A stretch of DNA of 64,000 bases from Macrostomum lignano (GCA_002269645.1 NIVC01000136.1:434001-498000); one strand, 5' to 3'. Positions 7,401 through 58,832 are shown, counted from the stretch's first letter. Notes: generated by a model from the sequence alone, not told the origin. Translations and numbers: made by a program.

Positions 7401-10400
7401 GCAGCTGCGTTGTTGGCGGCAAGAAAATCGCCTACGGCAAGAAGATTATCTACAAGTGCCAGGAGTGCACCTGCACTGCCGGCTCCTTGGAGTGCAAGCC
7501 CTACTACCTGGGCGACTGCGCAACTTTCCCTACTACGGTTCCTCCAACTACTACTCGTAAGACCGAATAGTGCATCTTTAGTGTTGTAAAATTTATCAAA
7601 CTAGCAACATAATTTCCATTCTCCTGATGCAGCTTTCTGCACCGGGCCCGGCCTGATCATCTGCCGCGGTGAGCGCAAGTACTGCGCGAAGCGCTGCGAC
7701 GGCAACCGCGAGTGCATGTACGGCGACGACGAGCAGTGCTGTCACGGCAACTGCACCACTACAGAGCCAGCCACTCGACCGCCAACGACCACAACGCCGC
7801 TGACCACCACGACAACGGCTGCCTGCCCGGCGCCAAAGATTCGCGTCGACTGCGCGCCGAAGTGTCCGAAGCGGTGCCACTACCAACGCTACACCAACCC
7901 GACTGGCTGCTCGATGTCCGAGTTCGAGTGCGAGTCCGGCTGCGTCTGTCCGTCTGGCATGGTCTCCAACGGCGAGAAATGCGAGCCAGAGTCGCACTGC
8001 ATGTGCTACGACAATGTCGCCAAGGTTGTGCGAAAGGTAAGCAGAAAAGATCTTTTAATTTCGAAACTTGAACTACTGCTGAATCTGATGATTAGTAATC
8101 GCATTCGTCATACACGCAATGGCAGCGTGGGCGTCGTTTTTTAAAGCTATGGGGAAAAATTCTCAGGCGATTGAATTTCGCTGCGCTTGAATTTTTCAAG
8201 CTGAAAGAATTTCGCCAAAGTGAAATCGCCCTGTTTGGGGAAGGATCTGAGCACGGCTACGGCGATTGTGAAGTGGCAGCGAAGGAGCGCGGGAGGATCG
8301 GCGGTGGGGTGGGGGCGCCTCAGCGGCTCGTCCGCCATATGGCGTCTCTCGGAGGGGCAGCTGCGCGACGCGGAACACAATCCAGAGAAAATGTCGCTAG
8401 AGAGAGGAAAACTGAGCTCCGTTGAGAGGGGCGTTGAAATTCCAGTTGGAGCCAGACTCAACTTAGAGTGGGGACTGAGGCGCAAGAGCAAAAATGTCTT
8501 AGATTTCAGGCATCAGGGGGTCCTGTCTGACCAATGGTATTAAAAATTTCCCATTTTTTAATATTGTAAAAGTCAATAGTGTCATGCTTTGCTGGCGTGA
8601 CAGGAGGGTTGAGAAAAACTTTGTCGATCAGAAAGGAAAAGTGCGAGCATTAATAATGACACATCTACAAAGCGTCTGGAATGTAGCGTATTGTTGATTA
8701 TCTCAAAACTTCATTGCAGCCTGGAGAAAAGTGGGAGGTTGACTGCCGCGTGTGCGAGTGCTCCAACAACGATGTCAAGTGCTCGCCGAAGTGCTCAACA
8801 ACCTGCCCACCTGGCAGCAAGGCCATCTCCGTGTCGGGCAAGTGCTGCCCGGTGTGCAGCACCACCACAACTACCACGACGGTTCCAACAACGCCAACTT
8901 GCCCCGCGGGAATGGAGCGCGTTGACTGCCGATGCACAAGAACCTGCGACGATGTGCTCGCTGGCCGCAGCGCCTGCAGTCTACCCGACGGCGTCCGACC
9001 AGACTCTGAGGGCAAGTGCTGCATGGACAAGTCGAAGGTCTGTGCCGAAGGAATGGTTTTGTCATCTTCGGGAGCTTGTGTCAACGAGACTCAATGCGTC
9101 TGCAAGCCAGACAACCAGCCGATTGGTCGTGTCTTCCGCGTCAACGGCACCGACTGTGACAAGAACTGCCAGTACAAGGTGAACTGTGTACGCACCTGCA
9201 CTCCAATCTGCGAGCTGACAACTTGCGCCCCGGGTTACAGGCTTGTGCAGCCATCTGGAAGCTGCTGCCGCTGCGAGGTGAACCCGACCACACCGCCGCC
9301 AGCCTGTCTGGACAAGGACGGCGTTAAGCATTCTGAGGGCTCGACCTGGCGCTCGGGCTGTGCCATCTACACCTGCACCAAGGGCGTGATTTCCTCCAGG
9401 AAGGAGTGCAACGTTACTTGCGCCCCAGGCTTTATTCTGCGTCAGTACCCGACTAACCCAACCCGGTGCTGCGAGTGCGAGCGATTGGCAACAACGACAG
9501 TGATTGTGACACCGACCACAACCACTCTGACGAAGTGCACGCACCACGAGATCACTCTGGCCAGCGATTCTGGCTCCAAGTTCGAGATGCGCGCCAGCTC
9601 AAACAACATCGACCGGCTCAAGGCGCTGAAGGGCGCCCCCGCTAACAGCAGTTGGAGTCCAGACGCATCGGATGATGAGCCAAGGCTTGTGTTCGCTATC
9701 ACGCCGCGACCAGGCAGCCGAACCATCATCACGAAGCTGGAGCTGACAGCCACCAGAGCCCGATCAGTGGAGGTCGAGTTTACCAGCGGCAGCGACATCT
9801 GGTATTCGAAGCGAGTAGCCACGCCATCTTCCAGCGGTCTTGTCTCGCTCAGTTTCAGCAATGAAACAACTGACGGAGTCTCCGCCACGGCAGTGCGAGT
9901 CACATTCCCCCGCGGCTCAGGCGTCAAGGTGAACCCGTCCGTGTCCGGCCTGCTTATCTCTGCCTGCTTCGAAGTGAGCACAACAGTCGTCGCGCCAACA
10001 ACTACTCCGATATGCGCCAGCGGAGACAAGAAGGTCATCAGCGAGTGCATCAGCCAGGTGTGCGAGTCTGGCGCCTGGATCCGCAAGAAGTCCTGCTCCA
10101 TCGAGTGTGGCAGTAGCTGCTCAATCGTGCATTTCTCCGGAGATGCCTGCTGCAAGTGCTCCTGTGGCACCACCACGACTACTAGAGTCGTTACGACCAC
10201 CACCGCGCCGCCAACAACAACCACGCCCATGTGCGCGGCCCCGATGGAGCCGTCTGACTGCATGCGCAAGTGCCGCAAGTGCCACTACATCGAGCCGGAG
10301 TGCAGCTCGGAGGGAAAATTCCCCTGCGAAAGCGGCTGCCAGTGCCCATCTGGCTACAGAATGAACTCCACCAACCACTGCGTCAAGTCAGAAGACTGCA

Positions 10401-13400
10401 GCTGTCGATCGCCCGATGGCAAGGTCCGCTCCGCTGGAGATGTCTGGGTTGTTGACTGCATCCGATACACCTGCGCCAACAACACGATCAGCAATCTGGG
10501 CCGAGTGCCGTGCAGGAGTGTCACATGCCCGGTTAGTGTTGATACCGCTGTTGTTAAACCGTACGCTTCTAAAAACCACTATTGCATAAAATTATTTAAT
10601 CACTAACTTTAGGCCGGCTCAATGATGGTGACTGCCGATTGCTGTCCGTCATGCGTCACTAAGCCGCCCACAACGGGCCCGGAGACCACATTGCCGCCCA
10701 CGACTACAGTTGCGCCCAAGCGTGTCTGCCACTACCTGGATCCTGCGACCAACCGTACTGTGGAGAAATCAGTACGAAATAAATTATTTTGACAAATTTA
10801 TTTTAACAGTTGAGCACCCGAATTAAACTCCTTTCTTTTGACGCGATTGCAGATCAATGAGACCTGGGTTGAGACAGCCGTCGGTACGTCCTGCAAGCGT
10901 GTCTGCTCGTGCACTACGGCCGCCATGGTCGAGTGCAAGAGTGTCGCCATCAGCGCCGCTGAGAAAGCGCAATGTTTGGAAAGCTGCCAGAAGAAGTATC
11001 CGGTATGTTTCTACCCACAAGCAAATTTTCTTACTTCAATTAGTACATGTAGGTTTAGTCTAGAATTAACTGTCGCACTAAAACTTTTTAGACTGACAAG
11101 GATGTGAAGGCCAACTTCGATTCCAGCTGCCGTTGCGGCTGCACGTCAAGCTGCACAGAGTTGAAGGTGTGCGAGCTGCCTTGCAACGAGACAGTTGGCA
11201 GTTTGGACGAGCAGAACCTCTACTGTCTGTCCAAGGGCCTTTTCAAGACCGAGCCAAAGTGCACCTGCAGCGAGGCTCTGCCAGGCTACGGAAGCTCGGA
11301 AGTTAGAAGCGCCACTTTCGGAGGTGCAAAACACTGCTTCGCTCAGAAGACGTGCACAAAGAGCTGCAATTACAACGGCAAGAGAGTTCCGGTACGCATT
11401 TTTTACAGAAAGTTAGAGTATTAATGATTGATGTATTTATGACTCGCTCAAAATGTTTTCTCTAAAAACCAATGCGCAGATCCACGGTGTGGTCAAAGAG
11501 GTGGACTCCACTGGTAGCGTTATTCCATGCCGAGAGTGCACCTGCGGCGAGTCCTTCACAATGTCGTGTAACACGGTGAAGAACTGCACTGTGACCACAA
11601 CTGAGGCGCCAAAAACAACGACGGCTCCGGGCTGCTCCTGCGCCAAGCCCTACGAAGAGTCCGTCAACTCCACTGGAAAGTGCCGGGAGAAGATCTGCCA
11701 CTATCTTAAAGGCTCGTGCGTTTCTCGCGGCGAATGCAACTGCGAATGTAAGGGCGCCTATCTGTTCTTCAACGGTACAACCTGCGTTAACCAGGCCAAC
11801 TGTTATTGCAAAGACGAGAATGGCGCTTTGAGAAAGGTGTGATTTCATCATTTATCCTTTTTTCATAAGACTTTAAGACTTACTTATTTGCAACTTTTCT
11901 GCCGACTCACCCATTTAGAACGGAGAGAAATGGCAAAACCCGACCGATCCGTGCAAGACGCACATGTGCGTGGACAACCAAATCCAGACGTCTGATAGAC
12001 GGCCCGACTGTCCGAAGTTCGTTTGCCCACCAGACTCTGTGCGCCAGGTTCCCCCTGGCAAGTGCTGTGCCATCTGCACGCCGCAGAATGTGACTACAAC
12101 AACAGCAACCACTACCCCGAGGCCGACAACTACGACACCGATGCCGACGACAACAACACTACGATGCGCCGATTGCGGCATCTGCAAGATCCCTGGCTGC
12201 TTCCCTGCAGACAGTCTAGAGCTTGTCACTGCAGCAGCCGCCAGAACCTGCGACTACCAGCACTGCTGCTCCCCACCATCTTGCCCATCAAGCACAAGCG
12301 AGGTCAGGTACATCCGCTACAGAACCGTATGCGTGGCTTACAAGCTTTGTATGACGACAACAACCCCGCCGCTGCCGACCACAACTACCACAACACCGAT
12401 GCCAACGACGACTACCGCGTTTATCGAGCGTCACGGTATGGAAAATAATTATTTTGGGGTTGTATATTTGAGCTTTAAAAACCAATAAAAGTAACTTAAT
12501 TTACAATTGCAGTGTGCACTGATCCAATGACGCCGATGAGAGCCATCCAGAGCTACACTGGTACGTCTGGTATCGCATCTGAGGCTAGCCCCGGCAAGTC
12601 CGGCTGGCGGCCATCGACCAGTGGCACAATGAATGAGATGCTGACCATCAAGTTGGGCTTCGGAATTCCGTTTACTGGCTTCGAAATTAAGACATCTAAC
12701 GTGAAATTCTTCAGAGTGAAGTACAGTGACGCAACTGGCAGGGTATTCAACCCTTACACTGAGGCCAGCGTCACTAAAGTGTTCTCAGGCAGCGACTTTG
12801 CCTCAACCGGCCGATTTATCTTCCGCAAGAGTTTCGTCGAGACGGTAGTCTACGTGCGACTGGAGATCATTTCGTTTGTTATCCCTGGCGCACCGGCATC
12901 AATTAACTTCGAGCCTCTGGGATGCTACAAAGTGACAACCACAACACCTTCAACTACAACTACAACTTTGAAGCCAACAACAACAACACCGATTCCTCCA
13001 ACAACAACAACAACAACAATCGCTCCAACGACTACACCATCTTGCACTATCACCGAGGGAATGAACGCCGACCTGTACATTCCACCAACTTCCATCACAG
13101 TGAACCCACGCCTTGCCTGGGGATCAGTCAATGATATCCGACCGTCCGGTTCGGGCTGGAAGGTCCCTGTAGCAAGACCCGGAGAAGACAATCCGAGCGT
13201 TGTTGTCGACCTAACTCGTGGCGGAGTTGATGAGCCTACCTTCTTGGACACTGTACAAGTCTTTGGCAATGCTAAGTCCTTCAGCCTGCTGTACACGAAG
13301 AAGGGCTCAAGTGAGTTCAAGCCGTTTGGCTCACTGAACTGGCCAAGTCTGGTTCCAGCCAAGGTTACTCAGAATGACTGGACTCAGGTCAAGATCGTTT

Positions 13401-16400
13401 TAACTGGCCCAACAAACTCCTCTGACAGCACTTACGATGTGAAGATCTCTATCCGTGGCTGCTTTAAGTCCAAGCCATTCGTGACTACACCGGCTCCTAC
13501 CATCTGCCCACTGACTGACGGAATGAGAGAGCCGGCCTATATTGAGGATTCGGCTATCACCGCTGTTTCAAGCGGTAGCACACCAGTCCCAGTGACTGAG
13601 GTCAGAGCCGGAAAGACCGGCTGGGTGGCTCCATTGACTGGCAGTCAAGTTATCATCGACTTTACAAATGGTGGCAAGACAGCTGCGCCAAGAATCGCTA
13701 GCTTTGCCGTGCGAGGCACCGTTAAGACCTTCCGAATGATGTACCAGCTAAAGGGTAGGTCAAGCTTTGAGCCATTCCCATCGATTGTGACTCAGATCCC
13801 AGCCAACAAACATATTGTGACGAAGCCGGAGCCAGAGGTTGAGAAGCTGAAGATCATCCCAGTTGAGCCAGCCGATAAGTCTCAGACGAATTTCCGGTTC
13901 ACAATCGAGGTAATCGGATGCTTCCAACGAATCCCAGCAACAACTACAACCACAGCGGCAACAACCACAACGACACCTGTGCCAACAACAAAGCCGCCTT
14001 GTGACGAAATTATGTCAGGAAGAGAGATTTCTTCTCGTGCGATCAAGGTGCAGCCGGCGCCAAAGAACTCTATCGACTCTATTCGAGCCGATGCGGCTGG
14101 AGTGATTGTGCCAATGCCCATCGACCCGTCTCCAGCCAAGCGTCCGACTGTTGAAATTGACTTGACTGATGGTGGAAAGTATCAGTTTGCCAAGATGCAC
14201 CGCTTCAGGGTGTCCGGTAGTGTCAAGCTGTACGATCTGTATTTCCAGTACAACGGTGAGAGTAACATGACTCGCTACCCAGAGTCCAGCTCTTATCCAA
14301 GTTCTGGCAACGAGATCATCTACGTTGATCCGCACGCCAATGTTCAGAAGATTCGTATGGTTCTAAGAAACAACACGGACGCCAAGGCTGAGAACTATCA
14401 GTTCAGCATTCACGTCGTCGCTTGTCTTAACCCGGCAGTGGCCACAACTACAAGTTCGGCCATTACCAACACAGCCACTGCTTCGACAGGCAGTGTTACC
14501 AGATCGATACCACCTTTCCCTACTCGGCCGCATGTCACCACAACAGCCAGTGCTACAACAACTGCTGCTACAACCACAACAACAGCTGCAACCACAACAA
14601 CAGCTGCTACAACTACAACTACGGCTGCTACAACCACAACAACGGCAATGCCAACAACAACGACACCTAAATGTCCGATTGTTGAAGGAATGTCGAGCCC
14701 GAAATACATCCCGGATTCTTGGATTTCTGTTAGGCCCAGCAACTATTCATCAACAATCCCAGAAATTAGAAAGGGAACGTGGACAGTGCCTAAGGACCTT
14801 GACGGCCGCCTTGTGCAAATCATTGTCAACAGCACAAATGTTCCATTCGAGGTTGACAGAATTGAAGTCGGTGGAAACGTAAAGGACTTTGCTCTTGAAA
14901 TCGTGACACCCGATGCATCAAGACTTCGGCCATTCCCATTGGATGGAACGCCATTGAAGGGCTCTGCGAATGTGAGCCTAACACTGACGGCGTTTAGAGT
15001 CACTCTGCGCTCAACTTCTAATCCAGCTGACAAAGACTACGTTACTGGCTTGAAGGTATTTGCTTGCCTGAAAGAAACAACTGCCACGACCACACCGGGT
15101 AAAACTAACACAGCAACAGAATACACAGGTACTGTAACGAGATCAACGCCAAAGCTGCCATCAATTCCATCATTTACTACGACTCCAGCTAGTACAACAA
15201 CAATGGAAGTAACTAACACAGCGACAGAATACACGGGTACTGCAACAAGATCAACACCCAAACTTCCACCAATTATTCCGACTCGGCCACCCACTACTAC
15301 CGAAGCAGCTACAACAACAACAACAGCTTCTACTACAACAACTGCTACAACTCCAACTGAGAGGATTAAGGAGAAGACAACCACTGCAGCTCCAACAACT
15401 ACAACAACACCAAAAAAGACAACTACTACAACAGCTGCGACTACAACAACCGCTACTACTCCAACAGAGAGGATCAAGGAGAAGACAACTACTCCTACAA
15501 CAACAACAACAACAACAACAGCTGCAACAACAACAACAACAGCTGCGACAACAACAACAACAACCGCTACTACTCCAACGGAAAGGATCAAGGAAAAGAC
15601 GACTACTCCTACAACAACAGCTGCTACAACAACAACAACGACAGCTGCGACAACAACAACACCTGCAGTGACAACCACAGGACCTCCTTCGCTGCCTGAA
15701 TGTGACGCTGGCAAGTATGCTGACGGCATGTCGAATCCGAAATACATTCCTGACTCAAGCATCGAGGTTTATCCAGCTAACTTATCCTCAACAAAGGGTA
15801 ACGTTAGATCTAAAGGCTGGGTTGCTCCTCTTATGCAAGCTGGACGCCAGCCGGAAGTCAAAATCACATTTGTCAAACCAACGAGAATTGATTCGGTAAG
15901 ATTGGCGCTACAAGTAAACAGTTAACAAATTTACAAATGCTTAAAATTATGTTTATGCTTAAGATTATTATATTTTAATTTTAGATCGTCGTCCGTGGAG
16001 ACCTTAAGACGTACGTGCTAGAGATTCAAGAGGACGGTGCCAAGACAACAAGAGTTTATCCCGAATCTGGAAGAAAACTTATTGGAAATAAGGAAGAGCG
16101 AATGATTCCCCACCGCGTATTGACACAAGTTGTTGTAAGACCATCTGTACCTCTTGTGATCGACCAGAAGTCATACAATCTGACTGTTGCTTTGCATGGC
16201 TGTTACGTGATTGCCGAGACAACCACGACTGTAGCAACAACTACAACTACAGCAGCGCCAACGACAACAACAACACCAACTACAACTACAAGGCCAGCGA
16301 CGACTACAACTACAAGTATTACAACAACAACAAAGGCACCAACTACCACCACAACACCAACAACAACAACCAAGGCTGCTACAACAACCACGACAAAAGC

Positions 16401-19400
16401 AGCAACAACAACCACCTCAACCGCTGCACCAACAACAACCACCTCAACCGCTGCACCAACAACAACCACCTCAACCGCTGCACCAACAACAACCACCTCA
16501 ACCGCTGCACCAACAACAACCACCGCACCAACAACAACTACTCAGAAGCTAACTACAACGACCACTGCTTCGACAACAACAACAACGGCTACAACTACTA
16601 CAAATGCGACGACAACCAGTAAAAACACGGCTACCAAGTCAACTGGGACTGTCACAACAAAGAAGTTGACTTTCCCAACTATTTCAACGACTCCGTCTGT
16701 TGCCACCACAAGTAAGACACTGGATAACTTTTATAAAACTATCAATTACGAATAATGACGGAAATTCTTATATAATTTATTTATGCTATAATTTTTGCAG
16801 CTGCTGCAGAAACGTGCAATGAGGAGGGCATGACACCAGAGAATGCTCCTGTCAGCGCCATCAGCATACTGCCAGCCAACATGAGTCTGACTGATGATAA
16901 GGAGCTTATCCGACTGAACAGAACTGGAATGAAGATCATGAAGCCCACCGATGATCAGCCCAACCCAGAAATCATCGTCGACCTGATGCTCGGTCGTACA
17001 AAGGCTCCGTTCATCGAGAGAGTCTACGTTATGAATAATATCAAGACAGCCAAGATGGAGGTTCAAACACCTGGCAGCAGTGCATGGGTGCCAGCCTCTG
17101 GAAGCTCAGCACTAGTTAACTTCCGTGAAGCCCCCAACTACAAGCCTGTGCTGAAAACAGCAGTTAAACTGCGCATCACACTGCTTACAACTCTTGACTC
17201 TATTGACAAGCACTTCCTAGTAACACTGTCCATCAAGGGCTGCTTCACCAAGCCAATCATTACACCGACAAGTTCCACGGGCACGGTTACAACAGCCACA
17301 ACGTTGCCTCGTAAGTTTCTAGTTTATTATAATTACTAAAGACTTTGTGCACAACGTATCCTTATTTATTTGCAGCATGTGAGATTACCGAGGGCATGGA
17401 CGTACCAGCAACAATAACGGACTCTGCCATTGAGGGAAAGCCGGATCACCTGAGCAACCCAACTGAAGCTAGACCTTCTAAGGGTGGCTGGAGAGTGACA
17501 GTGCCGAAGGTGCCCACTGATGCCAAGCCCTACATCACAATCGATCTCACCGAGGGTGGCTACAGACAGCCGCAGTACACAGACAGAGTCTCTGTCACTG
17601 GCAACGTAATGTTTTACAGGCTTTTGATTAAGGAGAAGCCGGGCGACAACTTCACACAGTACCCACGCAGCGTAGAGCTAATCAGAGGCAACAACCCGCA
17701 GTACATCCTTCCTCGGCGAACAATCGCTGCCATCAGAATCGAGCCAGTTAAACCTATGACGTCGGATGCAACCCACTTCAAGTTCCATGTTCACGTGTAC
17801 GCTTGCTTCAAGTCGTTCTCAACTACAGCTGCGCCACCCACGACGACAACAACTAAGGCCCCGACAACAACCACGCCGACAACAACTGTAACTACAACTA
17901 CCATGCCGACAGAAAAAATCAAGGAGAAAACAACGCCGCCAACAACAGCTGCACCGGTCACCACGACAACCACAAAGGCCGCGACAACAACTACAACTTC
18001 AGCAACAACCACTACAACTCCGACAACAACCACAACAACTCCGACAACAACCACAACAACTCCGACAACAACCACAACAACTTCAGCAACAACCACAACA
18101 ACTCCGACAACAACTTCAGCAACAACCACAACAACTCCGACAACAACTTCAGCAACAACCACAACAACTCCGACAACAACTTCAGCAACAACCACAACAA
18201 CTCCGACAACAAATTCAGCAACAACCACAACAACTCCGACAACAACTTCAGCAACAACCACAACAACTCCGACAACAACAACAACAACTCCGACAACAAC
18301 AACAACAACTCCGACAACAACAACCACAACTCCGACAACAACTACAACGGCAACACCAACAGAGCGAATCAAGGAAAAGACGACAACACCATCAACAACA
18401 ACTACAACTACAACCACGACAACGACCCCGACAACCACTACAACGCCAACAACTACAACAACTCCAACAACAACAACAACTGCGGCGCCAACTACTACAA
18501 CAGCAGCTGCACCAGGTAGATACAAAGTCAATTAAGTGAATGGTTCAATATTTTATCAATTATTCTTACATGAAATTAATGTTTTAAAAAACTTTTACAT
18601 TTTCTGCTCTTTTTTCCAGAATGTGGCGTTGACGGTCTGAAGAATGAGCTCATTATTCCCAACTCGGCCATCAGTGGTGGGCCTGAGACAGTAAGCGCTG
18701 TTCGCAATGTGCGAAGCAACCTTGGTGGATGGAGGGTTGCAGTGCCATCTGCGGGACAGCCAAGACCTAACGTGACTATCGATCTAACAGCCAATGGACT
18801 GGCAAAGCCCGCGCCTCTTATTGAGCAGATTCGCGTGGTTGGCAACGTGCAGAAAGTTCTTGTCCTGATCCAGTACGCTGGCGAGAAGACCTGGGTTTCC
18901 GTTCCTGAAGGCTCTGGGCATGTTACTAATGGAAATACACCGATAAATATTTCACCGAATGCGAGACTAGCAAAGGTGCAAATTGTGCCTTTTACAGCTG
19001 ACAGCTCTACTGTGACTCACTATCGATTCCATGTGATCGTTCTGGGTTGCTTTAAGGAAGTCCTTACCACTACTGCTTCTGTACCAACTACAACCACTCC
19101 GGCAGCAACAACAACAACATCACCGACTACAACAACAACAACACCGACTACAACAACAACAACACCGACTACAACGACAGCGACGACAACAACAACAGCA
19201 ACGACAACAACAACACCGACAACTACAACAACAACACCAACTACAACAACAACTACACCAACTACGACAACACCGACAACAACTACTACCGCGTCAACAA
19301 CAACAACAGCGCCATCGACAACCAATGCCAAGTGTCCTATCGTCGATGGCATGGAGAGCCCGAAATCTATTAGCAGTGACAGCATCCAAATTAGTCCAAT

Positions 19401-22400
19401 GACTTCGAAGGTGTCCATCGACAGTTTACGACCTAAAGCTGGAGGCATAGAATTGAGCAAGATAGACGAACCGTACGTAACAGTTGATCTGACTGAAGGT
19501 GGCAAAAAGAAAGGAGAGATAGTTACTGGAATCAAGGTAACAGGAAACGTTAAAACTATGCACATCTCATTCATGAGAGTTGGCTCGACTGAGTTCGAGT
19601 ACTATCCTTCAAAGTCGAGTGAAGTGCCCGCTGACAAAGAGACTGAGCTGCCGCACTACATCACTGTGTCTAAAATCAGAGTTAAACCGAGCTCCACACT
19701 GGTTGATTCTGACAAGACCTACAAGTTAACCTTAGCTGTAAATGGATGCTTTAAGCAGGTTCCCACTGAACCTCCAACAACAACAAAGACAAAGGCAACA
19801 ACAACTACGACTACACCACTAACAACAACCACTACCGCAGCACCAACAACAACAACAACACCATCTACCACCACCACAACGCCATCAACAACAACAACAG
19901 CTGCAACAACAACAACAACAACCGCTACTACTCCAACGGAGAGAATCAAGGAAAAGACAACTACTCCTACAACAACAACAGCTGCAACAACAACAACAGC
20001 TGCAACAACAACAACAGCTGCAACAACAACAACAACAACCGCTACTACTCCAACGGAGAGAATCAAGGAAAAGACAACTACTCCTACAACAACAACAGCT
20101 GCAACAACAACAACAACAGCTGCAACAACAACAACAACAACAACAGCTGCAACAACTACAACGCCTGCAGTGACAACTACTACCACAACGCCAACAACGA
20201 CAACACCAAGAACTACTACTACAACATCAACAACAACACCATCTACCACCACAACGCCAACAACAACAACAGCAACAACAACAACGACCACTACCACAAC
20301 ACCAACAACAACAACAACTCAACGACCAACAACTACTACGACTTCGCCACCAACAACAACAACAGCATACTGCCCGTGGAATGATGGAATGAAAGATTTT
20401 ACAGCCATTCACACGGGTAGCATCAATATTTATCCTTCGTCATCATCCGTGAAGCCAGATGACGTGAGACCAACAGCGACTGGAATTGAGTTACTTAAGG
20501 CAGACTCTCCTTATATTGTTGTTGATCTAACAAATGGCGGACTCAATAAGCCTGTTGTCATTAAATCTCTCAGAGTTGTAGGTAATGTGAAGAATATTTT
20601 GGTTTCGTACGTCCCAGAAGGTTCGACAGAATACACTTACTATCCATCGAAGTCAAAGGTTATCTCGACAGAGGCTGATATTGATATACCAGGACATGTC
20701 AGCGTGAAGTATTTGCGAATCAATCCCGTGTCGACTAAGAACCCGGATGACGCAAGATACAAAATAACTGTCAGTGTTATTGGTTGCTTTAAGCAGGTTT
20801 CGACAACACCAACAACAACAACAGCTACAACAACAACAGCTAAAAAAACAACAACAACAGCTGCACCAATAACAACAACTACAACTCCATCAACTACAAC
20901 TACACCGCCAGCGTCAACTCATGCCTACTGTCCATGGAACGACGGCATGAAAGATGTCACCGCCATTCATTCGGGCAGCATTTCAATTTCTCCACCATCA
21001 TCTACAGTGAAGGTTGACGACATTCGTTCTGGCAGTGCTGGAATCGAACTGAAAAAGTCGGCGGAACCGTATATTACAATCGACTTGACAAACGAGAAGC
21101 GAAACAAGCCTGTTGTAGTTAAGACAATTAAAATCACTGGTAATGTGAAGAACGTACTCGTTTCGTACATCCCAGCAGGATCTACAGAGTACACGTTCTA
21201 CCCAGAGAAATCGAGACCGCTTCCAACTGATGAGGATATCGAGCTGCCAAAGTACGTTAGCATTAGCAGCCTCAGAATTGCCCCGGAGTCGACCAAGGAG
21301 CCAACTGATCCTACGTACAAACTGTCTATCAGCGTGGTTGGTTGTTTCAAGCAAGTCACCACTACGCCAGCAGCAACAACGACAACAACAACAGAAACAA
21401 CCACAAGAAGCACTACCACCGCATCAGCAACAACTACAACGGCACCTCCGACAACCACAGCACCATTCTGCCCATGGGCTGATGGAATGAATGACACAAC
21501 CATGGTACACACAGAGAGCATCGATATCTCTCCGCCGACATCGGGCGTTAAGGTTGACGACGTACGTACATCGGGCTCTGGTTTGGTGCTGAAGAAGACA
21601 TCCGAGCCATACGTATCGATTGACCTGACCAACAATGGTGCGAATAAGCCTGTAGTCGTGGAAAGCATTCGAGTGTCAGGAAACGTTGATAAATATTTGG
21701 TCTCTTACATGCCAGAAGGATCAACTGAGTTCACATACTATCCATCCAAGTCTACTCCAGTGTCAGCTGCAACTCCACTGAAGCTCTTGAAGTACACAAC
21801 AGTGTCAAAGCTTCGCATTCAACCCGTTTCAACAGTTAATTCAACCGATTCAGAGTACAAATTCACCGTTTCACTGATTGGATGCTTTAAGCAAGTGTCT
21901 ACAACCCCAACAACAACTACGACAACCATGAAGCCTACAACAACCACATCGGTTCCGAGCACGACTACAACACCTATGTCGACTACGACTACCGAAGCTG
22001 CCACAACTACACCGAAATATGGTAGGTTTTATAATGCTTAATTTTTTTATTACATAATTAACCGCTTTTAACGACGAGCTATCCACATGTATCTCATTTT
22101 AGCCTGCCCAAGTGGCGCCACGTACATGGAGGGAATTTCTTCCACTAAGTATGTCCCTGACAGTGCAATCATGGGCCAGCCAGACACACTCAGCCAGCCA
22201 ACCAATGTTAGATCAACGAAAGACGGATGGAAGGTTGCCAAGGCGACTGCTGATCAACCAAAGTCATATCTGCTTGTTGACTTGACGGACAACGGCAAGC
22301 GTCATCAGCCGATTGTCAGAAGTGTGAGTAATCGGTGCTTGAAATTTGAATTCAAATTGCAATAGTAGTTTTTAGAAATCGTACACGATTTATGAATGTC

Positions 22401-25400
22401 CTTTTTGAATCTTTCTTTGTCATTTTAGTTGAAAATCTTTGGCAACGTCAAGACTGCTCAACTGAAGATTAGGTATTCCAAGGACGGCGAGTTCACAGTA
22501 TATCCCGAGACTGGCTCCAAGATGATCAATGGAAACGAAGATGTTTTCATCATGCCGGCGTCCAGAATCTCAGCCATTAAGATTGTGCCCCTAGTGTCAA
22601 CCATTCCCGACGATACACACTTCAGGTTCAAATTGTACGTACATGGCTGCTTCTTTAATGAAGTTATCACGACCACTGCGACGACAACAACAACAACACC
22701 GACAACAACAACAACGCCTACTCCAACGACTACTACGACAACTTCTACAACAACAAAAGCACCTACTACCACTGCGCCAACAACAACAACAACACCAGAG
22801 GCTACAACAACCACGACAGAAACAACTACAACACCGAAGCCTACAACGACAACAGCGACAACAACAACACCAGAGCCTACAACAACAACAAAAGCAACAA
22901 CAACAACAACAGCCAGGCCGACTACAACTACAACAACAACTACTACTACAACTCAGAAACCAACAACTACTACATTGGCTCCCACTACGACAACAACACC
23001 AACTACTACCACAACTGTAGCACCAACTACAACAACAACGCCAACAACTACCACAACAACAGCACCAACTACGACAACAACACCAACTACCACAACAACA
23101 GCACCAACTACGACAACAAAACCAACAACTACCACAACTACAGCTCGAACTACGACAACGATGCCAACAACTACCACAACTCCGACAACAACTACCACAA
23201 CTCCGACAACAACTACAGCAACAACTACAACTGGAGCTCCAACTACCTGCCCGCTCGGATCGGACATGCAGGAAGTGATGGCCCGGCCCTCTGTCATTCC
23301 AGACAGCGCTATTCGAGTTCGTCCGGTGTCTGAGGCGTTTGATGCCGCCAGTGTACGACCGAACCGTGGAGGCTGGAAGGCCGTCGTGCCCGCTGCCAAC
23401 GAGAGCAAACCTGAGATCACAGTTGACCTGATGAGCAGCCCGTCAGTGACATCGGCGCCGATCGTTCAGAAGATCAGACTGGTTGGCAATGCAAAGACCG
23501 CCTATCTGATGGTGCAATATAACAAGGAGAAATCATACACCCGATTCCCTGAGTCAACAACAGCTGGTATCAACGGAAACGAGGACATCTACATCCCGTC
23601 TGCATCGAGAATCATGTCGATCAAGGTGTTGCTGAAGGAGCCAAAGGATGCTTCCCAGACACACTTCAAGGTACATCTCGAAGTATTCATGTGCGTTCCG
23701 AAGACAACAACAACTGCTGCCACGACTGCAACGGAGCGAATTAAGGAAAAGACTACAACTTCAGCGACAACAACAACAACTGCAGCGACAACAACTGCTA
23801 CTACAACAACACCAAAGCCAACAACAACTACGGCACCACCAACAACAACTACTCTTGCACCAAGTACAACAACAACTCCTACCACGACAACACCTAAGAC
23901 AACTACTACAACGGCTTCCACAACCACAACCACAGCTGAACGAACAACGACGACAACACCAGAGCCGACCACAACTACAACATCAACACCAAAAGCAACA
24001 ACAACTACATTGGCTCCCACTACGACAACAACACCAACTACCACTACTACAGCACCAACTACGACAACAACGGCAACAACTACCACAACTGCGACAACTA
24101 CCACAACTCCGACAACAACTACCACAACACCGACAACAACTACAGCAACAACTACAACTGGAGCTCCAACTACCTGCCCGCTCGGATCGGACATGCAGGA
24201 AGTGATGGCCCGGCCCTCTGTCATTCCAGACAGCGCTATTCGAGTTCGCCCGGTGTCTGAGGCGTTTGATGCCGCCAGTGTACGACCGAACCGTGGAGGC
24301 TGGAAGGCCGTCGTGCCCGCTGCCAACGAGAGCAAGCCTGAGATCACAGTTGACCTGATGAGCAGCCCGTCAGTGACATCGGCGCCGATCGTTCAGAAGA
24401 TCAGACTGGTTGGCAATGCAAAGACCGCCTATCTGATGGTGCAATATAACAAGGAGAAATCATACACCCGATTCCCTGAGTCAACAACAGCTGGTATCAA
24501 CGGAAACGAGGACATCTACATCCCGTCTGCATCGAGAATCATGTCGATCAAGGTGTTGCTGAAGGAGCCAAAGGATGCTTCTCAGACACACTTCAAGGTA
24601 CATCTCGAAGTATTCATGTGCGTTCCGAAGACAACAACAACTGCTGCCACGACTGCAACGGAGCGAATTAAGGAAAAGACTACAACTGCAGCGACAACAA
24701 CAACAACTGCAGCGACAACAACAACTGCAGCGACAACAACAACTGCTACTACTACGACACCAAAGCCAACAACAACTACGGCACCACCAACAACAACTAC
24801 TCTTGCACCAACAACAACAACAACTCCCACTCCAACGGAGCGAATCAAGGAAAAGACTACGACTGCAGCGACAACAACAACATCTGCTACTACTACAACA
24901 CCAAAGCCAACAACAACTACGGCATCACCAACAACAACTACCATTGCGCCAACTACAACAACTCCCACTCCAACTGAGCGAATCAAGGACAAGACTACAA
25001 CTGCAGCAACAACAACAACTACTGCTACTACCACAACAACAGCTGCGACGACCACAACAACCGCTGCACCGACAACAACAACAACGCCTACTACAACGAC
25101 TGCTTCAACAACCACTACTACAACTCAAAAACCAATGACAACAACAACTGCTGCGCCAACGACGACAACTGCACCAACAACCACTACCACAGCCGCAGTA
25201 ACAACCACTTCTATTATCGATTGTGACACTCTTGAAGAAGCCATCAATAACCCGAGCTACATTCCTGCGACAGCCGTTACAGTCAGTGTGGGATCGTTCT
25301 CTCAGAATAAATGGACAATTCCAGCTTCCGCTAAGTCGCCTAGTATTGAGGTCGTCATGAACCGCATGTACAGCTCTCTAAAATTGGCTCAGGTTTGTAA

Positions 25401-28400
25401 CTCACCTAGACTCTATTTTCAAAAGTAAAAGCTAAATAAAGTATTTATTATTTCTATTTTCAATATTGTACACTACTTACATTGTTCTAGGTTCGCGTGG
25501 ACTCGCCAGTCGCCGGATCAGTCGTGGCTGAGTACATATATGCCAACGAGACAGCTTGGACCCCAATCAATGAAGTTGGCAAGCCGAAGGGAACTATTTC
25601 GTCCGGACTTACATTTGAAGTTGCCCCGAGGGCTAAAATTACAAAGATCAGGTTCACAAATGTTACTTTCTCATCTGCAGCAGATGTTACTGCTACTATT
25701 AGCCTTAAGATCTGCAAAATGAATGGCGTTAATACTAATACTGCTGGAACTGCAACAGCCACAGCGAAGACGCCGTTCAAACCACCAACTGTTCCTCGTT
25801 ACACAACAACGGAAGCGCCGACAACAACAACAACAACAACAACAGCAACAACAACAACAACAACGCCAGTCCCTACTACCACAACAACACCAAAACCAAC
25901 AACAACAACAGCTCCAACAACCACTACTACAACTCCAACAACAACAACTACAGAAATACCAACGACTACGACTACTACAACAACAGCAAAACCAAAAACA
26001 ACAACCACACCAGAGACAACGACTACCACTACAACACCAGAACCAACAACAACAACCACACCAGAGCCAACAACTACCACAACAACACCAGAACCAACAA
26101 CAACAACCACACCAGAGCCAACAACTACCACAACAACACCAGAACCAACAACAACACACCAGAGCCAACGACTACACAACAACACCGCAGACAACTACCA
26201 ACTACAACTACAAGTTCCTACAACCACAACGACACCAAAAACAACAACAACTACACCAGTTCCGACAACTACAACGACGCCAACTACTACTACAACAACC
26301 ACATCAGCGCCAACAACTACTACTACAAAAGCAGCAACAACTACTACTACAGAAGCAGCAACAACTACTACTAGCCCAGCTTGCGACGAGACTTGTCTGT
26401 TGGACTTCGGCTGCGACCGAAACGCTCAAGTGCGAGCCCCTGGTGGTGCGTCCTCAGTTCAGCTGACTGACTTTAAGGGATCCATCTCAGAGCAGTTTGC
26501 GTGCATTGCAAAGACAGTCACTTGCTGTCCAGATGGCTACAGCAAGGTCGACAAATTCTGCGTCAAGGACACGGTTGGTTGCACTACAACGCCTCCAATC
26601 GATTGTAAGTCGCCACTTCCAAGCACCTGCCTAAAAGAAGTGACATGCGAAGAGATGACATCCGTGAGATTCAGTGAGCCTGTAAACTCTAACTCCAAAT
26701 GTCACAGCATTCTGTCGAACTGCGGATCATCTATCTGTCCAACTGGATATCGAAACAACATGAAGGGATATTGTGTCAAGTACCCAGGCTCAGATACATG
26801 TCTCAGAGCCTGCCAGTGCAAGTTCAGAAACGGAACCACAACTGACATCCGCATTGATGAGTGGTGTGACATGGGTGACTGCAGAGAGTGCCAGTGCCGC
26901 TGGGACTCCAAGAAGGGAGGCAAGATTTGGAGCAACTGCCGAGCCGGCGTCTGCACATCGCATCGCCCGACCACAGCGGAGCCAATCACAACAACAACTA
27001 AGATTGTTACAACTACAACCACGCCAGTGCCAACAACTACAGTCTTGGAGACAACAGTGGCTCCGACTCCGCCACCAGTGTGTGACAAGGTTGTCAGCGA
27101 TGTATCTAGCGGCTTCTTCCTGCGCTTTGACGCTTCTTCAACAGAGGAAGGCAGAACTGTAAGCAACGCAGCGCCAACCTCTACAGGCTGGCGTTCAGCC
27201 TCCAGCGATTCCAACCCGTCGTTGAGCGTTCGCTTCAGAGACACCATCCAGCTGTCGCACATTGACATCAGCCCGTACAATATCCGTTCCGTATCCATTG
27301 ACGTCAGCACCGATAATCGAGTATTTACACCTGTCAAAGATGCCTCTGGAGCCATCCGGCTGTGGAACATGAACGACAAGTTTGGCGAATATCAGCGAAT
27401 TCGGCTGGCCATGCTAAAGGCGGATCTTATCGATACGCTCGCCGTGCGCATCAACATTCAGCGCATCAGGTCAGATTTGGCCACCGGCCTCAACATCCGG
27501 GTCTACGGTTGCCCGCCCGAGTGCAAATCGCCAATGGTGCCCACCAACTGCACCTGTGTGAAGACCTGCGACAAGACCGAGTGCCCGACAGGATCTGCTT
27601 GCCTGCCAGGCTGCACCTGCCCGGAGGGAATGGTAATGAACGGTGGAAAATGCATCGCTCGAACGGAGTGCCCGTGTTACTACAACGTTCAGAGCAGAGT
27701 ACTCAAGGTTTGTAATATTCATCTTTGCATCAATATACATGTAGCTTCACTTCATATTTTCGATATTAATGTCATGATAACATAGCGGTACAACCCACCA
27801 TCCTTTGATTATTCAGATTGGTGAGAAGATCCCGAGTGCGAAGAATTGCACAGATGTTTTGTGCACAGCTAGCGGACTGGTGCGTGAAGTGAACACAGAG
27901 CGTGACGGATGCCACAATTGCAGTAAGTTTTGAGCATTGCCTCTGCAAGTTAATTTTAATTCTATATACGCAGGTAAAAACAATTGCAAATCTACTCGTC
28001 CCTCAGCCGGTGGCATGGAGTGGACACCGTGCAAAGACTGCCACAAGACCTGCAAGCACCGCAAGATGTCTGCTGCCTGTCTCGCAACCTGCAAGCCTGG
28101 CTGCGCCTGCCCGAAGGGCACCTACATGGACGAGGCCTCAGGAAAGTGCGTGCCCAGCTGCCCCTGCGAGATGGAGGGTGTAAAGTATCCAGTTGGAAAG
28201 AAATGGACTGACAAGTGCCGCTCCTGCGAGTGCACCATGGAAAAGGGCGCCGTGTGCAAGGAGTCCGGCTGCCATCTGTCAACTTGCCCATCTGGATATG
28301 TGATGAAGAACGACGACCCCGCCGATGGTAAGTGCTGCGAGTGCGTGCCGATCAAGTACTGCGAGTACAAGGGCGTGAAGCACCCTCTCGACACGGTGTG

Positions 28401-29359
28401 GTCTGACGGCCCGTGCAAGTCGCTCGAGTGCCGACGAACCTCATCGGGCGAAACCAGGCTGGTAGAGAAGATCACAGAATGCCCAGCTAAATGCGCCAAC
28501 GGCATGGCACCTGTGGTAAAGGGCAACAAGTGCTGCTACTGCGAGCCTGTGACCACCACGACTGCTCCGACTACGACAACTACCGCTATCGTCACAACCA
28601 CTGCGCCAGTCTGCACGCTACACCTCTGCCGACTGCCATGCGGCTCCGAGTCCATGAGCAACATGACCGACGTCCGGTCCAAGTGCATCAAGTCAGGCTA
28701 CGTAAACTGCGGCTACGTCTGTCCAGCCGGCTACACGATGCGCAATTTGTCGTCTGGCAACGTCGTGTGCGAGATGATCGAGGCCTGCACCACAACAACT
28801 CCCGCTACAACAACAACTACAGCCGCCATTACAACAACCACTCTGGCTGCCACAACAACTACAAATGCTACAACAACTGAGGCGCCATCCAACTGCAAGC
28901 CGGTGACAACTGCGGCCAAGGTGCTGCGTCAGGGCGACTGCGTGTCAACCAAGGCGGTGGCCCTGACCGCCTGCGCGGGTGGCTGCTCCAGCGGTGCCTA
29001 CGTGAGCGAGGCTACTGGCATGCTGGTCAGTCAGTGCGCCTGCTGCCAGCCAACATCCACGAGCACTATGGAGACGCAGCTGTCTTGCCGTGAGTGCCTC
29101 CTCCGTTCAGTTCGTTCAAAGCAAAGTTCTCTTGAGCTAGTCTTGGAGTTCCAGACTTGAGCAAATAATACCAATATTAGTTCAATCATGTATCAATTGC
29201 ACCCTGCTCAATTGAGGTAGCCTAGGCCGGGGTTTCATTCTGTGGTCAGCCTTGAACAAACAACTAATTACATGAACTATTTAACTTTCAGCTGGCGGAG
29301 TCACCAAGACGTTCAAGTACCAGGTGATTCGGGCTTGCGGCTGTCGGAGCTGCAAGTGA
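1149..29359 (+). CDS. Giant secreted gel-forming mucin / hemolectin-SCO-spondin-like VWD glycoprotein (~7,970 aa, 27 exons)
   Basis: Hand-built exons: 1149-1198, 1288-1452, 2285-2427, 3056-3262, 3356-3496, 3610-3969, 4059-4565, 4638-7127, 7221-7556, 7633-8036, 8720-10531, 10613-10771, 10853-11002, 11092-11391, 11480-11836, 11919-12435, 12513-15895, 15985-16711, 16801-17310, 17376-18515, 18620-22021, 22103-22323, 22429-25392, 25491-27707, 27817-27922, 28007-29089, 29292-29359. All introns are GT-AG with consistent phases, and the total is 23,919 nt. The N-terminus MGPGRYPAAVLLSAVLLYCSAVATA is a signal peptide. The donor at 12435 is the least certain junction. Confidence 0.9.
1578..2180. repeat. 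Intronic 48-bp minisatellite (~12 copies)
   Basis: Unit ATTCGTGAAGTTGGCTAGATTAGCAATCCATTCTACTGCATGTACATC, lying in mucin intron 2. Confidence 0.95.
2285..3496 (+). CDS. Mucin exons 3-5: four EGF-like repeats
   Basis: CSPKCDNGMCVAPNSCNCSSGWSGATC; CAKECANGGICVAPNTCRCAAGFDGEQC; CVGGCGSNGKCVRGRCVCNLGYKGDKC; CKNNCNSVGTCLAPNKCRCPDGYHGDLC. All are bounded by phase-1 introns. Confidence 0.9.
2445..3010. repeat. Intronic degenerate ~50-bp tandem repeat
   Basis: Recurrent core GTGTGAAGTCACTCT(G)TAGTTAGGGAAT in mucin intron 3. Confidence 0.85.
3610..4565 (+). CDS. Mucin exons 6-7: VWD1 + C8
   Basis: CSAFGGKHFLTFDG ... CGLCGRFDG, followed by a C8 domain (FSACHSRVN...CMKDMC...YSRAC). Confidence 0.92.
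4638..7127 (+). CDS. Mucin exon 8: TIL-VWD2-C8-TIL-TIL-VWD3-C8
   Basis: CTVSGDPTYRTFDG..TGLCGNFN and CRVWGDPHYETFDG..CGLCGNFN, with C8 and TIL cysteine patterns. Confidence 0.95.
7221..12435 (+). CDS. Mucin exons 9-16: TIL/VWC cysteine-rich modules, short Thr tracts and first discoidin-like module
   Basis: Repeated CxxxC..C..GCxCP and GxxWxxDCxxCxC..CCP motifs. A discoidin-like beta module lies at about 9535-9970. Confidence 0.85.
12513..15895 (+). CDS. Mucin exon 17: Thr-rich tracts with discoidin-like modules 2-7
   Basis: Modules open with C..xGM...IxxSxI, contain GW and vDLT..V.GNVK, and close with GC/AC. They are separated by poly-Thr. Confidence 0.9.
15985..18515 (+). CDS. Mucin exons 18-20: Thr-rich tracts with discoidin-like modules 7(end)-9
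   Basis: The ORF track, splice sites and module motif all agree. Confidence 0.88.
18620..22323 (+). CDS. Mucin exons 21-22: Thr-rich tracts with discoidin-like modules 10-15
   Basis: Includes three closely related CPWxDGM modules and CPIVDGM. Confidence 0.9.
22429..25392 (+). CDS. Mucin exon 23: Thr-rich tracts, duplicated discoidin-like modules 16/17, start of module 18
   Basis: Two near-identical CPLGSDMQEV...VFMCV modules 927 nt apart. Confidence 0.9.
25491..27707 (+). CDS. Mucin exon 24: Thr tract, Cys modules, discoidin-like module 19, TIL
   Basis: CDKVVSD...GWRS...RVYGCP, followed by a TIL pattern. Confidence 0.85.
27817..29359 (+). CDS. Mucin exons 25-27: TIL/VWC modules and C-terminal cystine knot (CTCK)
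   Basis: CKPV...GDC...CAGGC...CACCQP...SC|PGG...ACGCRSCK* has the CxGxC / CxCC / CxC cystine-knot signature. Confidence 0.9.
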
Positions 29360-31157: not shown

Positions 31158-31833
31158 TCAAACTTCTAGTCCGGTACAAACCTCTAGTACTGGAAGTAAA
31201 AACGTCCAATCCAGTACAAGCCAATTTATGAAGTACATTTCAGACAAATTACAAGTGATGTGGGGAAATTCTGCAAAGTAATGAGTTTCATAAAAAATGA
31301 AGCTCAACTTGAGATATCGGCAAGTTACAAATGGCAAGTGAGAAGCGTTTTTTCCAAAAGCCACGTCACATGGGATGATGTCTCTACAGGACGAAGTCAC
31401 GATGGATTCTTGACAAATTAATTACAGTCGCAAGCGTGAACTCTTCACAAGTGCATTGATCAGTTATCAGCTTGATTCACCAATTTTGATGTTGCTCGAG
31501 AAGCTGCTGCTTTATAAAACAAGAGCTCACTTGAATGAAACCGATCTGATACTCGTACAGCTCGGCAAACACACCGAGATCTGAGCTTGAGAATTCGGTG
31601 CATCAAAACTTGTTGAGCTGCTACGAAGAGGCAACGTCATGTGTCATGTACAAGCAGACGGTTTTGCGACAACTTATCCGAATATCTTTGAGGCCAATTC
31701 AAGCGCTCTGCAGACAGAATTGGCTTCAAACACCTGTCCGAGTAAAGTCAAGGAGGATCTGCTCCGCATTCTTAAAACTGGAGAGGCAGAATGGTCATTC
31801 CTCAATAAGGATTTCCTTGGGAATTAGTGATAG

Positions 31834-53745: not shown

Positions 53746-58832
<5,087 letters not shown>

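Follow-up and report, generated by a model that had tools for sequence, protein, structure and literature searches.

Gene structure and domain architecture

The 64,000-nucleotide stretch of Macrostomum lignano DNA analysed here (NIVC01000136.1:434001-498000, hereafter the window) contains, judging by its domains, an uncharacterised gel-forming-mucin-like gene, in which the motif described below is found. The gene lies on the + strand and extends approximately from 1240 to 29400, as estimated from tblastn, Pfam and long ORFs. Upon tblastn search, P0038 (PAA50248.1) was aligned to 1289-15409 of the window with 95–100% identity. EGF-like and VWD/C8/TIL domains occupy the N-terminus, CBM32-like domains alternate with poly-Thr tracts in the middle, and the C-terminus is Cys-rich. 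VWD, C8, TIL, and VWC were matched by Pfam in this gene, and the matches in 4592-7150 were VWD (1.1e-70, in two stretches), C8 (1.3e-30), and TIL (2.9e-23). Many Cys residues are also present in the C-terminal ORF (27934-29157), which closes with a CTCK-like pattern (C..CxGxC..CC), although only TIL passed there in Pfam. Our search of the literature on Macrostomum mucin found nothing on this gene.

Gel-forming mucins and von Willebrand-type polymers (MUC2, MUC5AC/B, MUC19, and their invertebrate homologues) have in common N-terminal VWD-C8-TIL (D) assemblies. Both Pfam and the best homologues of the N-terminal part, which are the N-termini of VWF and mucin-5AC/19, indicate such assemblies here, and the identity to Saccoglossus "VWF" and to the N-termini of vertebrate MUC5AC and MUC19 is 32–33%. 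Also similar to gel-forming mucins are the long Thr-rich centre broken by small globular domains and the Cys-rich C-terminus; the long central Pro/Thr/Ser-rich tracts are predicted to be O-glycosylated. However, gel-forming mucins use CysD domains between their tracts. No CysD was found in the PTS region of this gene, where the central ORFs gave no Pfam match, and a CBM32/discoidin-like beta-sandwich takes its place.

About 15 copies of this Cys-bounded beta-sandwich (~150 aa; CBM32, F5/8-C or DOC-like fold) were identified on the + strand between 13031 and 24630 by jackhmmer, alignment, AF2, and Foldseek. They set the poly-Thr tracts apart, and two of them are interrupted by short introns. 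The domain was modelled by AF2 with a pLDDT of 92.7, its fold was assigned by Foldseek against the PDB, and it had no match in Pfam. This Pfam-less CBM32-like domain, which chiton and annelid "mucin-2-like" proteins also have, may be the by-product of our analysis with the wider use.

Mlig-ap1 and Mlig-ap2, two adhesive proteins of M. lignano, are secreted and of large size, contain VWD/C8/TIL domains, and have been shown to engage in charge-based interactions (PMC6410801). In Mlig-ap1, a C-type lectin domain and 17 EGF modules accompany huge K/R-rich regions, whereas Mlig-ap2 combines LDL and TSP-1 domains with 46 repeats (255/221 aa) and is glycosylated with Gal-beta(1-3)-GalNAc (PMC6410801). 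The present gene shares the species and the VWD/C8/TIL domains with both, but neither of these architectures (PMC6410801) fits our map of Pfam matches, domains, and tracts, which rules out that it is Mlig-ap1 or Mlig-ap2.

Poly-Thr tracts and copies of the motif

A total of 13 Thr-rich tracts (36–239 aa, 45–72% Thr), with the character of mucin-type linkers, were found in the gene. The sole complex island (that is, not of Thr, Ser, Pro, or Ala) which recurs across them is ERIKEK. Scanning the whole window for TE[RK]IK[ED]K gave 11 sites, all on the + strand and in the frame of long ORFs, and none on the − strand. This agrees with the preliminary description, which had placed 11 copies inside poly-Thr tracts: each is present at its position, and the tracts are coding, within stop-free frames of 400–1150 codons and within two gene models independent of each other, P0038 and P0188. 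The same 11 sites were recovered with the degenerate DNA pattern GARMRRATYAARGANAAR at no more than one mismatch. Shuffled sequences gave an expectation of 0.06 matches, and 11 were reached in none of 100 shuffles, which rules out a chance occurrence.

Five of the 13 tracts carry the motif, all on the + strand. Tract A (15077-15700, 208 aa) has three copies of TERIKEKT in a tandem array at 15311-15675 with a period of 108/114 bp: A1 (15356-15379; ACT GAG AGG ATT AAG GAG AAG ACA), A2 (15464-15487; GAG AGG ATC), and A3 (15578-15601; GAA AGG ATC). In tract B (17816-18532, 239 aa), two copies lie on either side of a 33-bp repeat array. One of them, B1 (17909-17932; GAA AAA ATC AAG GAG AAA), is the R-to-K variant TEKIKEKT and is also present in P0188, and the other is B2 (TERIKEKT, 18359-18382; GAG CGA ATC). 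Tract C (19759-20358, 200 aa) has a tandem array at 19852-20156 with a period of 117 bp, and its two TERIKEKT copies, C1 (19936-19959; GAG AGA ATC) and C2 (20053-20076), are identical in DNA. The single copy of tract D (23704-24174, 157 aa), D1 (TERIKEKT, 23731-23754; GAG CGA ATT), is situated nine residues past a domain. Tract E (24631-25230, ~200 aa) has three copies and a tandem array at 24721-25079 with a period of 138 bp. These are E0 (TERIKEKT, 24658-24681), identical to D1 and inside a segmental duplication, E1 (TERIKEKT, 24835-24858; GAG CGA ATC), and E2 (24973-24996), the E-to-D variant TERIKDKT with a GAC codon. Thus nine of the 11 copies read TERIKEK. All the synonymous codon combinations listed earlier were found, plus GAA AAA ATC at 17909.

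These 11 copies cannot be counted as independent, being spread over three tandem arrays (units of 108–138 bp), one segmental duplication, and one pair; a regular period exists only within the three short arrays, of 2–3 units each, and outside them a copy stands alone or lies 450 bp from the next. The segmental duplication is 630 bp long and >99% identical (23248 to ~23880 and 24175 to ~24828). Tracts A and C are 83% identical over ~315 nt. Tracts D and E are 73% identical, with their first ~180 nt within the >99% identical duplication, and the motif-less units farther on in tract D can be aligned to units of tract E that do bear the motif. Flank identity in the other tract pairs (67–72%) is that of the poly-ACN background. 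The identical pairs 19936/20053 and 23731/24658 result from recent duplication, leaving eight distinct core haplotypes. In tract D, "TPKTTT" and "TAERTTT" might be deletion derivatives of the motif, and they are indistinguishable from chance in poly-ACN sequence.

Charged sub-motifs are known in the tandem repeats of other mucins, such as "PDTRP" in MUC1 and "KEPAPTT" in lubricin (PRG4). In common with these, ERIKEK is a short charged island in a putatively O-glycosylated Thr/Pro-rich repeat spread by tandem duplication. In MUC1 and PRG4, however, the island occurs in every unit and the whole unit is homogenised, whereas ERIKEK is sparse, its flanks are degenerate, and the island persists while its codons diverge synonymously. 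A VNTR of this kind would carry the island at a regular period in every unit; here a regular period is seen inside the three short arrays, and eight tracts, three long ones included, have no island.

Synonymous and replacement changes

Changes among the copies were counted on a neighbour-joining tree, which rests on low-complexity flanks and so makes the homoplasy counts uncertain. In the ERIKEK core, the ~8 distinct copies showed 10 synonymous changes and two conservative replacements (R to K and E to D), and the ratio for T-ERIKEK-TT was 21:2. The flanking codons (−4 to −1 and +9 to +11) gave 10:13. The central Ile was never changed to Val, Leu, or Met, though two synonymous changes occurred at it. 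A binomial test of the core, with neutral mutation as the reference model, gave p = 6e-7 to 3e-4, and a minimum-change lower bound of 6:2 gave 4e-4 to 1e-2. Fisher tests gave p = 0.03 for core versus flank and p = 0.001 for extended motif versus flank.

The motif uses codons much as the remainder of the gene does. Local codon bias, raised earlier as a possible confounder, does not account for the pattern, and an artefact of codon bias is ruled out. No partly decayed DNA copies were found in the window: the next-nearest 18-mers differ by at least 3–4 mismatches and lie outside the Thr tracts. Since no other 18-mer is within 1–2 mismatches, an ascertainment bias from decayed copies is ruled out in the window.

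The contrast between 10:2 in the core and 10:13 in the flanks, together with the lack of decayed copies, supports purifying selection on the peptide (p ~1e-6 to 1e-2, depending on the assumptions), because the changes in the motif were almost solely synonymous while the Thr/Ala/Pro flanks changed freely. The case is limited by the few independent lineages, ~8 haplotypes in five tracts. The preliminary description had proposed selection at the protein level rather than copy-paste alone. Its first half is supported by these counts, but copy-paste is clearly acting too, as seen in the tandem units, the segmental duplication, and the similarity of tracts A and C. Furthermore, a second copy of the gene (L001, 98.1% identical) has TERINEK at A3 (AAG to AAT at 15590). 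Over 1141 codons the two copies differ by just 11 replacements, of which this is one, and a radical change can thus be tolerated, at least for a time.

These last observations would also fit a functionless relic, in which ERIKEK is the non-repetitive "punctuation" of an ancestral unit that was duplicated or gene-converted and spared the slippage of ACA repeats. In that case the motif would be nothing unusual for the tandem repeats of a mucin. The majority of tracts being motif-free and the distant homologues lacking the motif point the same way. However, 10 synonymous changes against two conservative replacements within 18 nt would be improbable on this explanation (p = 6e-7 to 1e-2), the flanks reached 10:13 at equal divergence, and no copy has 1–3 nucleotide changes altering the peptide. 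We therefore regard a neutral origin of the pattern as rather unlikely.

It might also be supposed that the constraint is on the RNA, with the purine-rich GAGAGRATCAAGGARAAG acting as an exonic splicing enhancer or similar signal in very long ACA-rich exons and the peptide being incidental. By copy, 15 or 16 of the 18 bases are purines, the low-complexity exons measure 0.7–3.4 kb, and the majority of changes are purine-to-purine. But seven of the eight purine-to-purine changes are synonymous, compared with ~31–33% of those possible (p ~2e-3), and in the change from AGA to CGA, where A gave way to C at the first Arg position, the Arg was kept and the purine lost. Constraint thus follows the residue rather than the purine. 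Long exons without the motif also exist, such as tract 22660-23247. An RNA element fits worse than selection on the peptide and is very improbable.

Similarity to other motifs and proteins

The preliminary description had looked to orthologues and other mucins for the motif, and this expectation found no support among the homologues retrieved: the distant ones, from chiton and annelid, are without it, and none outside M. lignano has it. An exact-pattern scan of metagenome contigs with T-ERIKEK-TTT DNA gave no matches, and a word-indexed protein search with domain plus motif gave none at E<=1e-3. When tract A together with domain D4 served as the query, such a search likewise gave no match; saturated by poly-Thr candidates (8000), it missed even P0038 and is uninformative on orthologues.

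In full-text literature, "ERIKEK" was found only in one dehydrin paper and one unrelated paper. The dehydrin K-segment (EKKGIMDKIKEKLPG) has DKIKEK in its core, overlapping with EKIKEK in the copy at 17909. Both the K-segment and "KEKE" motifs have alternating K/E charges in disordered hydrophilic protein, as ERIKEK does. However, only [EK]IKEK overlaps with the 15-residue K-segment EKKGIMDKIKEKLPG, which is an amphipathic helix in a cytosolic plant protein, whereas the ERIKEK island, of 6–7 residues, is flanked by Thr/Pro and predicted to be coil in a secreted animal mucin. KEKE motifs are defined by at least 12 residues, with more than 60% K plus E/D and no W, Y, F, or P. The charged island here has six residues and is bounded by Thr and Pro. 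We rejected both assignments, and the resemblance is probably coincidental.

Possible roles of the motif

Our analysis of the sequence indicates, with fairly good confidence, that T-E-[R/K]-I-K-[E/D]-K-T-T is a lineage-specific peptide element of the disordered poly-Thr linkers, spread by duplication and under purifying selection. The motif spread with its units of 36–46 residues through tandem and segmental duplication and exchange between tracts, and then gathered almost solely synonymous changes. In the AF2 model of domain plus linker, the motif-bearing linker is a low-confidence coil (pLDDT ~54), which allows no inference on docking to the adjoining domain.

Because its acidic and basic residues and central Ile are fixed, it is predicted to be coil, and many copies occur per molecule, the motif may serve as a linear docking site, multivalent and probably free of glycans, and so act as a reversible "sticker" with glycosylated "spacers" on either side. 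This function by itself is possible though doubtful. Its specific partner could be another mucus protein, the lectin-like domains of the same protein, or the motif itself in another copy. Two ERIKEK peptides in antiparallel register have complementary charges (E1-K6, R2-E5). A selected peptide element with a sticker function is our best explanation overall, which we hold tentatively, at somewhat less than an even chance. More specifically, ERIKEK might be a sequence-specific short linear motif which programs sticker-and-spacer assembly of mucus. Several unglycosylated charged stickers, pairing with one another or binding a partner, would be set along glycosylated poly-Thr spacers and, in concert with the chain's own CBM32-like lectin domains, would produce reversible gel cross-links. 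This is a more speculative proposal, and rather improbable; if true, such assembly would represent a design principle not yet known from mucins.

Cleavage of the motif by a trypsin-like or other protease, as a naked R/K window where mucin segments are trimmed or released, would agree with its three basic residues in an otherwise protease-resistant Thr-rich context and with the predicted coil. The constraint on non-basic positions could be that of an extended protease subsite. However, every copy has the sequence E-[R/K]-I-K-[E/D]-K, in which no two basic residues are neighbours and the dibasic or R-X-[KR]-R consensus of furin-type proprotein convertases is absent. Eleven cuts would also break up a polymer which, judging by its VWD and C-terminal ends, appears to be assembled end to end. 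We consider processing unlikely.

Alternatively, the two invariant Lys residues of each motif, present many times per chain, may be donors for transglutaminase-type or lysyl-oxidase-type links which cure the secreted gel. Mucins such as MUC2 are cross-linked by transglutaminase, which provides a precedent. But an amine-donor Lys needs no strict conservation of Glu and Ile, K-to-N was tolerated in one copy of the second gene copy, and, by reading of the sequence rather than with a curated model, no known cross-link consensus was matched. Covalent cross-linking is thus quite unlikely.

If functional as a sticker or otherwise, the motif would be a simple, testable case of a short peptide code in an otherwise plain O-glycosylated linker tuning the material properties of mucus. 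M. lignano lends itself to a functional test, since established methods in this species include RNAi, in situ hybridisation, and footprint/mucus proteomics (PMC6410801). In synthetic-peptide form, the motif is TTPTERIKEKTTT.

Gene structure and internal domain

The ERIKEK motif, a charged peptide of the form TE[RK]IK[ED]K, was found in stop-free frames of 400–1150 codons, divided by short introns, of a mucin-like gene of the free-living flatworm Macrostomum lignano that extends roughly from 1240 to 29400. The 5′ part of this gene encodes VWD, C8, TIL and VWC domains (Pfam). Its best relatives are a Saccoglossus 'VWF' and the N-termini of vertebrate mucin-5AC and mucin-19, at only 32–33% identity. 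The internal domain, used as the profile in an exhaustive search, also retrieved a protein model of the same gene, PAA50248.1 ('hypothetical protein BOX15_Mlig026350g2, partial [Macrostomum lignano]'), which aligned to 1289–15409 with 95–100% identity. A 48-bp minisatellite of 13 copies lies in the first intron, together with a 49/100-bp repeat (1549–2183 and 2444–2802).

The centre of the gene has about 15 copies (13031–24630) of a Cys-bounded internal domain, each of about 150 residues, with 13 Thr-rich tracts of 36–239 aa (45–72% Thr) between them. More divergent copies were seen near 9500–10100, 12500–12950, 25230–25710 and 27000–27500. The domain had no match in Pfam. Its AF2 model is a beta-sandwich (pLDDT 92.7), and the best matches among PDB structures were CBM32, F5/8 type C and DOC galactose-binding-like modules, with TM of about 0.55–0.65. 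The search gave 218 matches at E ≤ 1e-3, and the relatives include a chiton 'mucin-2-like' protein, two Dimorphilus (annelid) proteins, another M. lignano protein and metagenomic proteins. The domain may represent a spiralian family of lectin-like mucin domains that is as yet undescribed. The gene agrees with gel-forming mucins in its N-terminal part and its PTS sequence, but between the tracts it has a CBM32-like module instead of CysD. Identity with the M. lignano adhesive proteins Mlig-ap1 and Mlig-ap2 was ruled out, as the architectures differ (PMC6410801).

Several domains are followed by a second recurrent linker element (...TNTATEYTGTVTRSTPKLP...; variants TNTATASTGSVTRSIPPFP, KNTATKSTGTVTTKKLTFP, TSSTGTVTTATTLP and NTAGTATATAKTPFKPP), located at 14462–14530, 15098–15300 (two copies), 16630–16700, 17270–17310 and 25730–25800. 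Its copies are degenerate, in contrast to those of ERIKEK. About 20 codons within the final poly-Thr tract (26150–26215) read HQSQRLHNNTADNYQLQLQV in the open frame; the surroundings are Thr-rich, and a different frame is T-rich at this point. A compensated frameshift may lie here, or a small intron, or the assembly may be in error.

Copies of the motif

Six-frame translation of the whole window gave exactly 11 matches, all on the + strand (at 15356, 15464, 15578, 17909, 18359, 19936, 20053, 23731, 24658, 24835 and 24973), the same 11 as in the preliminary description; every codon string quoted there was present at the motif sites. Nine copies read TERIKEK, one TEKIKEK (17909) and one TERIKDK (24973). 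A degenerate DNA pattern of the core found the same sites, where 0.06 would be expected from dinucleotide-preserving shuffles. Motif-bearing tracts make up 5 of the 13 Thr-rich tracts, and 5 of the 8 with at least 150 aa. Across the 13 tracts, ERIKEK is the sole recurring island of at least three non-T/S/P/A residues, within the extended conserved string [P/A]-T-E-[R/K]-I-K-[E/D]-K-T-T. Unique islands lie mostly at tract borders, and the other interruptions are of 1–2 residues, mostly a single K, V, E, I or R.

Tract A (15077–15700, +) has three copies in a tandem unit of 108/114 bp; tract B (17816–18532, +) has two, on either side of a 33-bp array and 450 bp apart; and tract C (19759–20358, +) has two, identical in DNA, in a 117-bp unit. 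Tract D (23704–24174, +) has a single copy (D1), nine residues after the domain, and tract E (24631–25230, +) has three in a 138-bp unit. D1 and the first copy of tract E (E0) count as one event, because both lie within a duplication of about 630 bp that is >99% identical (23248 to ~23880 and 24175 to ~24828). Identity is 83% between tracts A and C (about 315 nt) and 73% between D and E, the first ~180 nt of these two being part of the duplication; the remaining pairs share only 67–72%, the background level of ACN-rich sequence. The duplications, the identical pair in tract C and the A–C identity indicate that copy-paste is clearly part of the history of the motif. About eight haplotypes represent independent lineages.

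Evidence for selection on the peptide

To count changes, we placed the copies on a neighbour-joining tree. The six codons of the core showed 10 synonymous and 2 replacement changes (AGA to AAA, R to K; GAA to GAC, E to D), T-ERIKEK-TT showed 21 and 2, and seven flanking codons showed 10 and 13. Under a neutral mutation model (kappa 1–8, stop codons left out), only 16–31% of changes in the core codons are expected to be synonymous, and 10 or more synonymous changes out of 12 would arise with a probability of 6e-7 to 3e-4. For a minimum of 6:2, counted without a tree, p was 4e-4 to 1e-2. Fisher's test separated core from flank (p = 0.03) and the extended motif from flank (p = 0.001). Among the listed core transitions alone, which are independent of kappa, 9 were synonymous and 1 was a replacement, against an expected 1:2.

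Codon bias is not the source of this pattern, since codon usage in the motif resembles that of the rest of the gene (AAG 80%, GAG 77%). As an ascertainment check, we looked in the window for decayed copies and found no other 18-mer 1–2 mismatches from any copy; the nearest non-motif 18-mers, at 3–4 mismatches, lie outside the tracts. These counts, from few sites and a tree built on low-complexity flanks, support purifying selection at the level of the peptide. The earlier proposal of protein-level selection beyond copy-paste alone is therefore supported (10:2 in the core, with p from 6e-7 to 1e-2 under neutrality, and 10:13 in the flanks), with copy-paste at work too. A purine-rich RNA element would tolerate purine-to-purine replacements, but 7 of 8 such changes were synonymous (about 31–33% expected, p ~2e-3) and AGA to CGA retains Arg while dropping a purine; we regard this explanation as highly improbable.

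Second gene copy

The contig of PAA50248.1, NIVC01003685.1 (GCA_002269645.1), carries a second gene copy, 98.1% identical over 14.3 kb. The two may be alleles or homeologues of the polyploid M. lignano genome. Its tract-A motifs read TERIKEK, TERIKEK and TERINEK, and the K to N in the third is an AAG-to-AAT change (window 15590). At least for a time, then, the gene tolerates a radical change in one motif copy. This change is among 11 replacement codon differences, beside 23 synonymous ones, in the 1141-codon exon; the comparison showed no extra constraint on the motif, its power being nil with ~0.17 replacements expected in 18 motif codons.

Further observations weigh against selection on the peptide. 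Eight of the 13 tracts have no motif, and the tract D units that align with motif-bearing tract E units are also without it. E[RK][IVL]K[ED]K was absent from the 150 domain homologues listed and from extra cluster members, the M. lignano copies excepted, and a scan of the metagenome with the motif DNA pattern gave no match. That the motif is a neutral relic nevertheless seems unlikely to us, given the core counts.

The second copy (26 to end) and the window also differ by two gaps within poly-Thr runs (at window positions 14589 and 15497). The comparison shows ongoing length flux of the tracts between near-identical gene copies. In the second copy the 48-bp intron array (10402–11862) has about double the length.

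Possible role of the motif

The motif-bearing linker is predicted to be coil (pLDDT ~54). Two changes at the Ile were synonymous, and none replaced it by Val, Leu or Met. With the acidic, the basic and the hydrophobic positions all fixed, specific recognition fits better than a generic spacer for charge or hydration. Each chain carries 11 copies, 36–59 residues apart within clusters, which makes the motif multivalent. Read from the sequence, ERIKEK is self charge-complementary in antiparallel register (E1–K6, R2–E5). On these four grounds we tentatively favour a non-covalent docking 'sticker' as its possible mechanism. A protease site is a doubtful alternative, the convertase consensus being absent from the motif copies, and a covalent Lys cross-link site appears very unlikely. 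The wider notion that ERIKEK is a programmed sticker-and-spacer mucin code is speculative.

Mucin repeats with charged sub-motifs include MUC1 (PDTRP) and PRG4 (KEPAPTT). The M. lignano motif is analogous to these, but it is sparse and its flanks are degenerate. The dehydrin K-segment (core KIKEK) and the KEKE motif resemble it literally; both were rejected on length.

Other features of the window

Just downstream of the mucin-like gene lie a CT-rich 23-bp array (30158–31116, 42 copies) and a 25-bp array (31815–32213, 16 copies), which account for the GC-skew spike at 30–32 kb. Three arrays of a 23-bp satellite, AGACAGCACAATACTGATAGAAC, with 196, 29 and 95 copies (41648–46189, 52872–53541 and 58923–61105; 93–97% matches), surround an apparently intact non-LTR retrotransposon (53746–58829). 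It has an ORF1-like frame (53746–55011) and an ORF2 (54999–58829; 1277 aa, no stops) with AP-endonuclease, reverse transcriptase and RNase H domains. A tandem array of 42-bp units (51255–52532; 30 copies with 97% matches) can be read through in each of the three + frames, and one of them gives KCWIGNAEEETPEE repeats. An ORF with a carbohydrate-binding WSC domain (32758–33219; Pfam E = 2.6e-14) probably belongs to a neighbouring gene as one of its exons.
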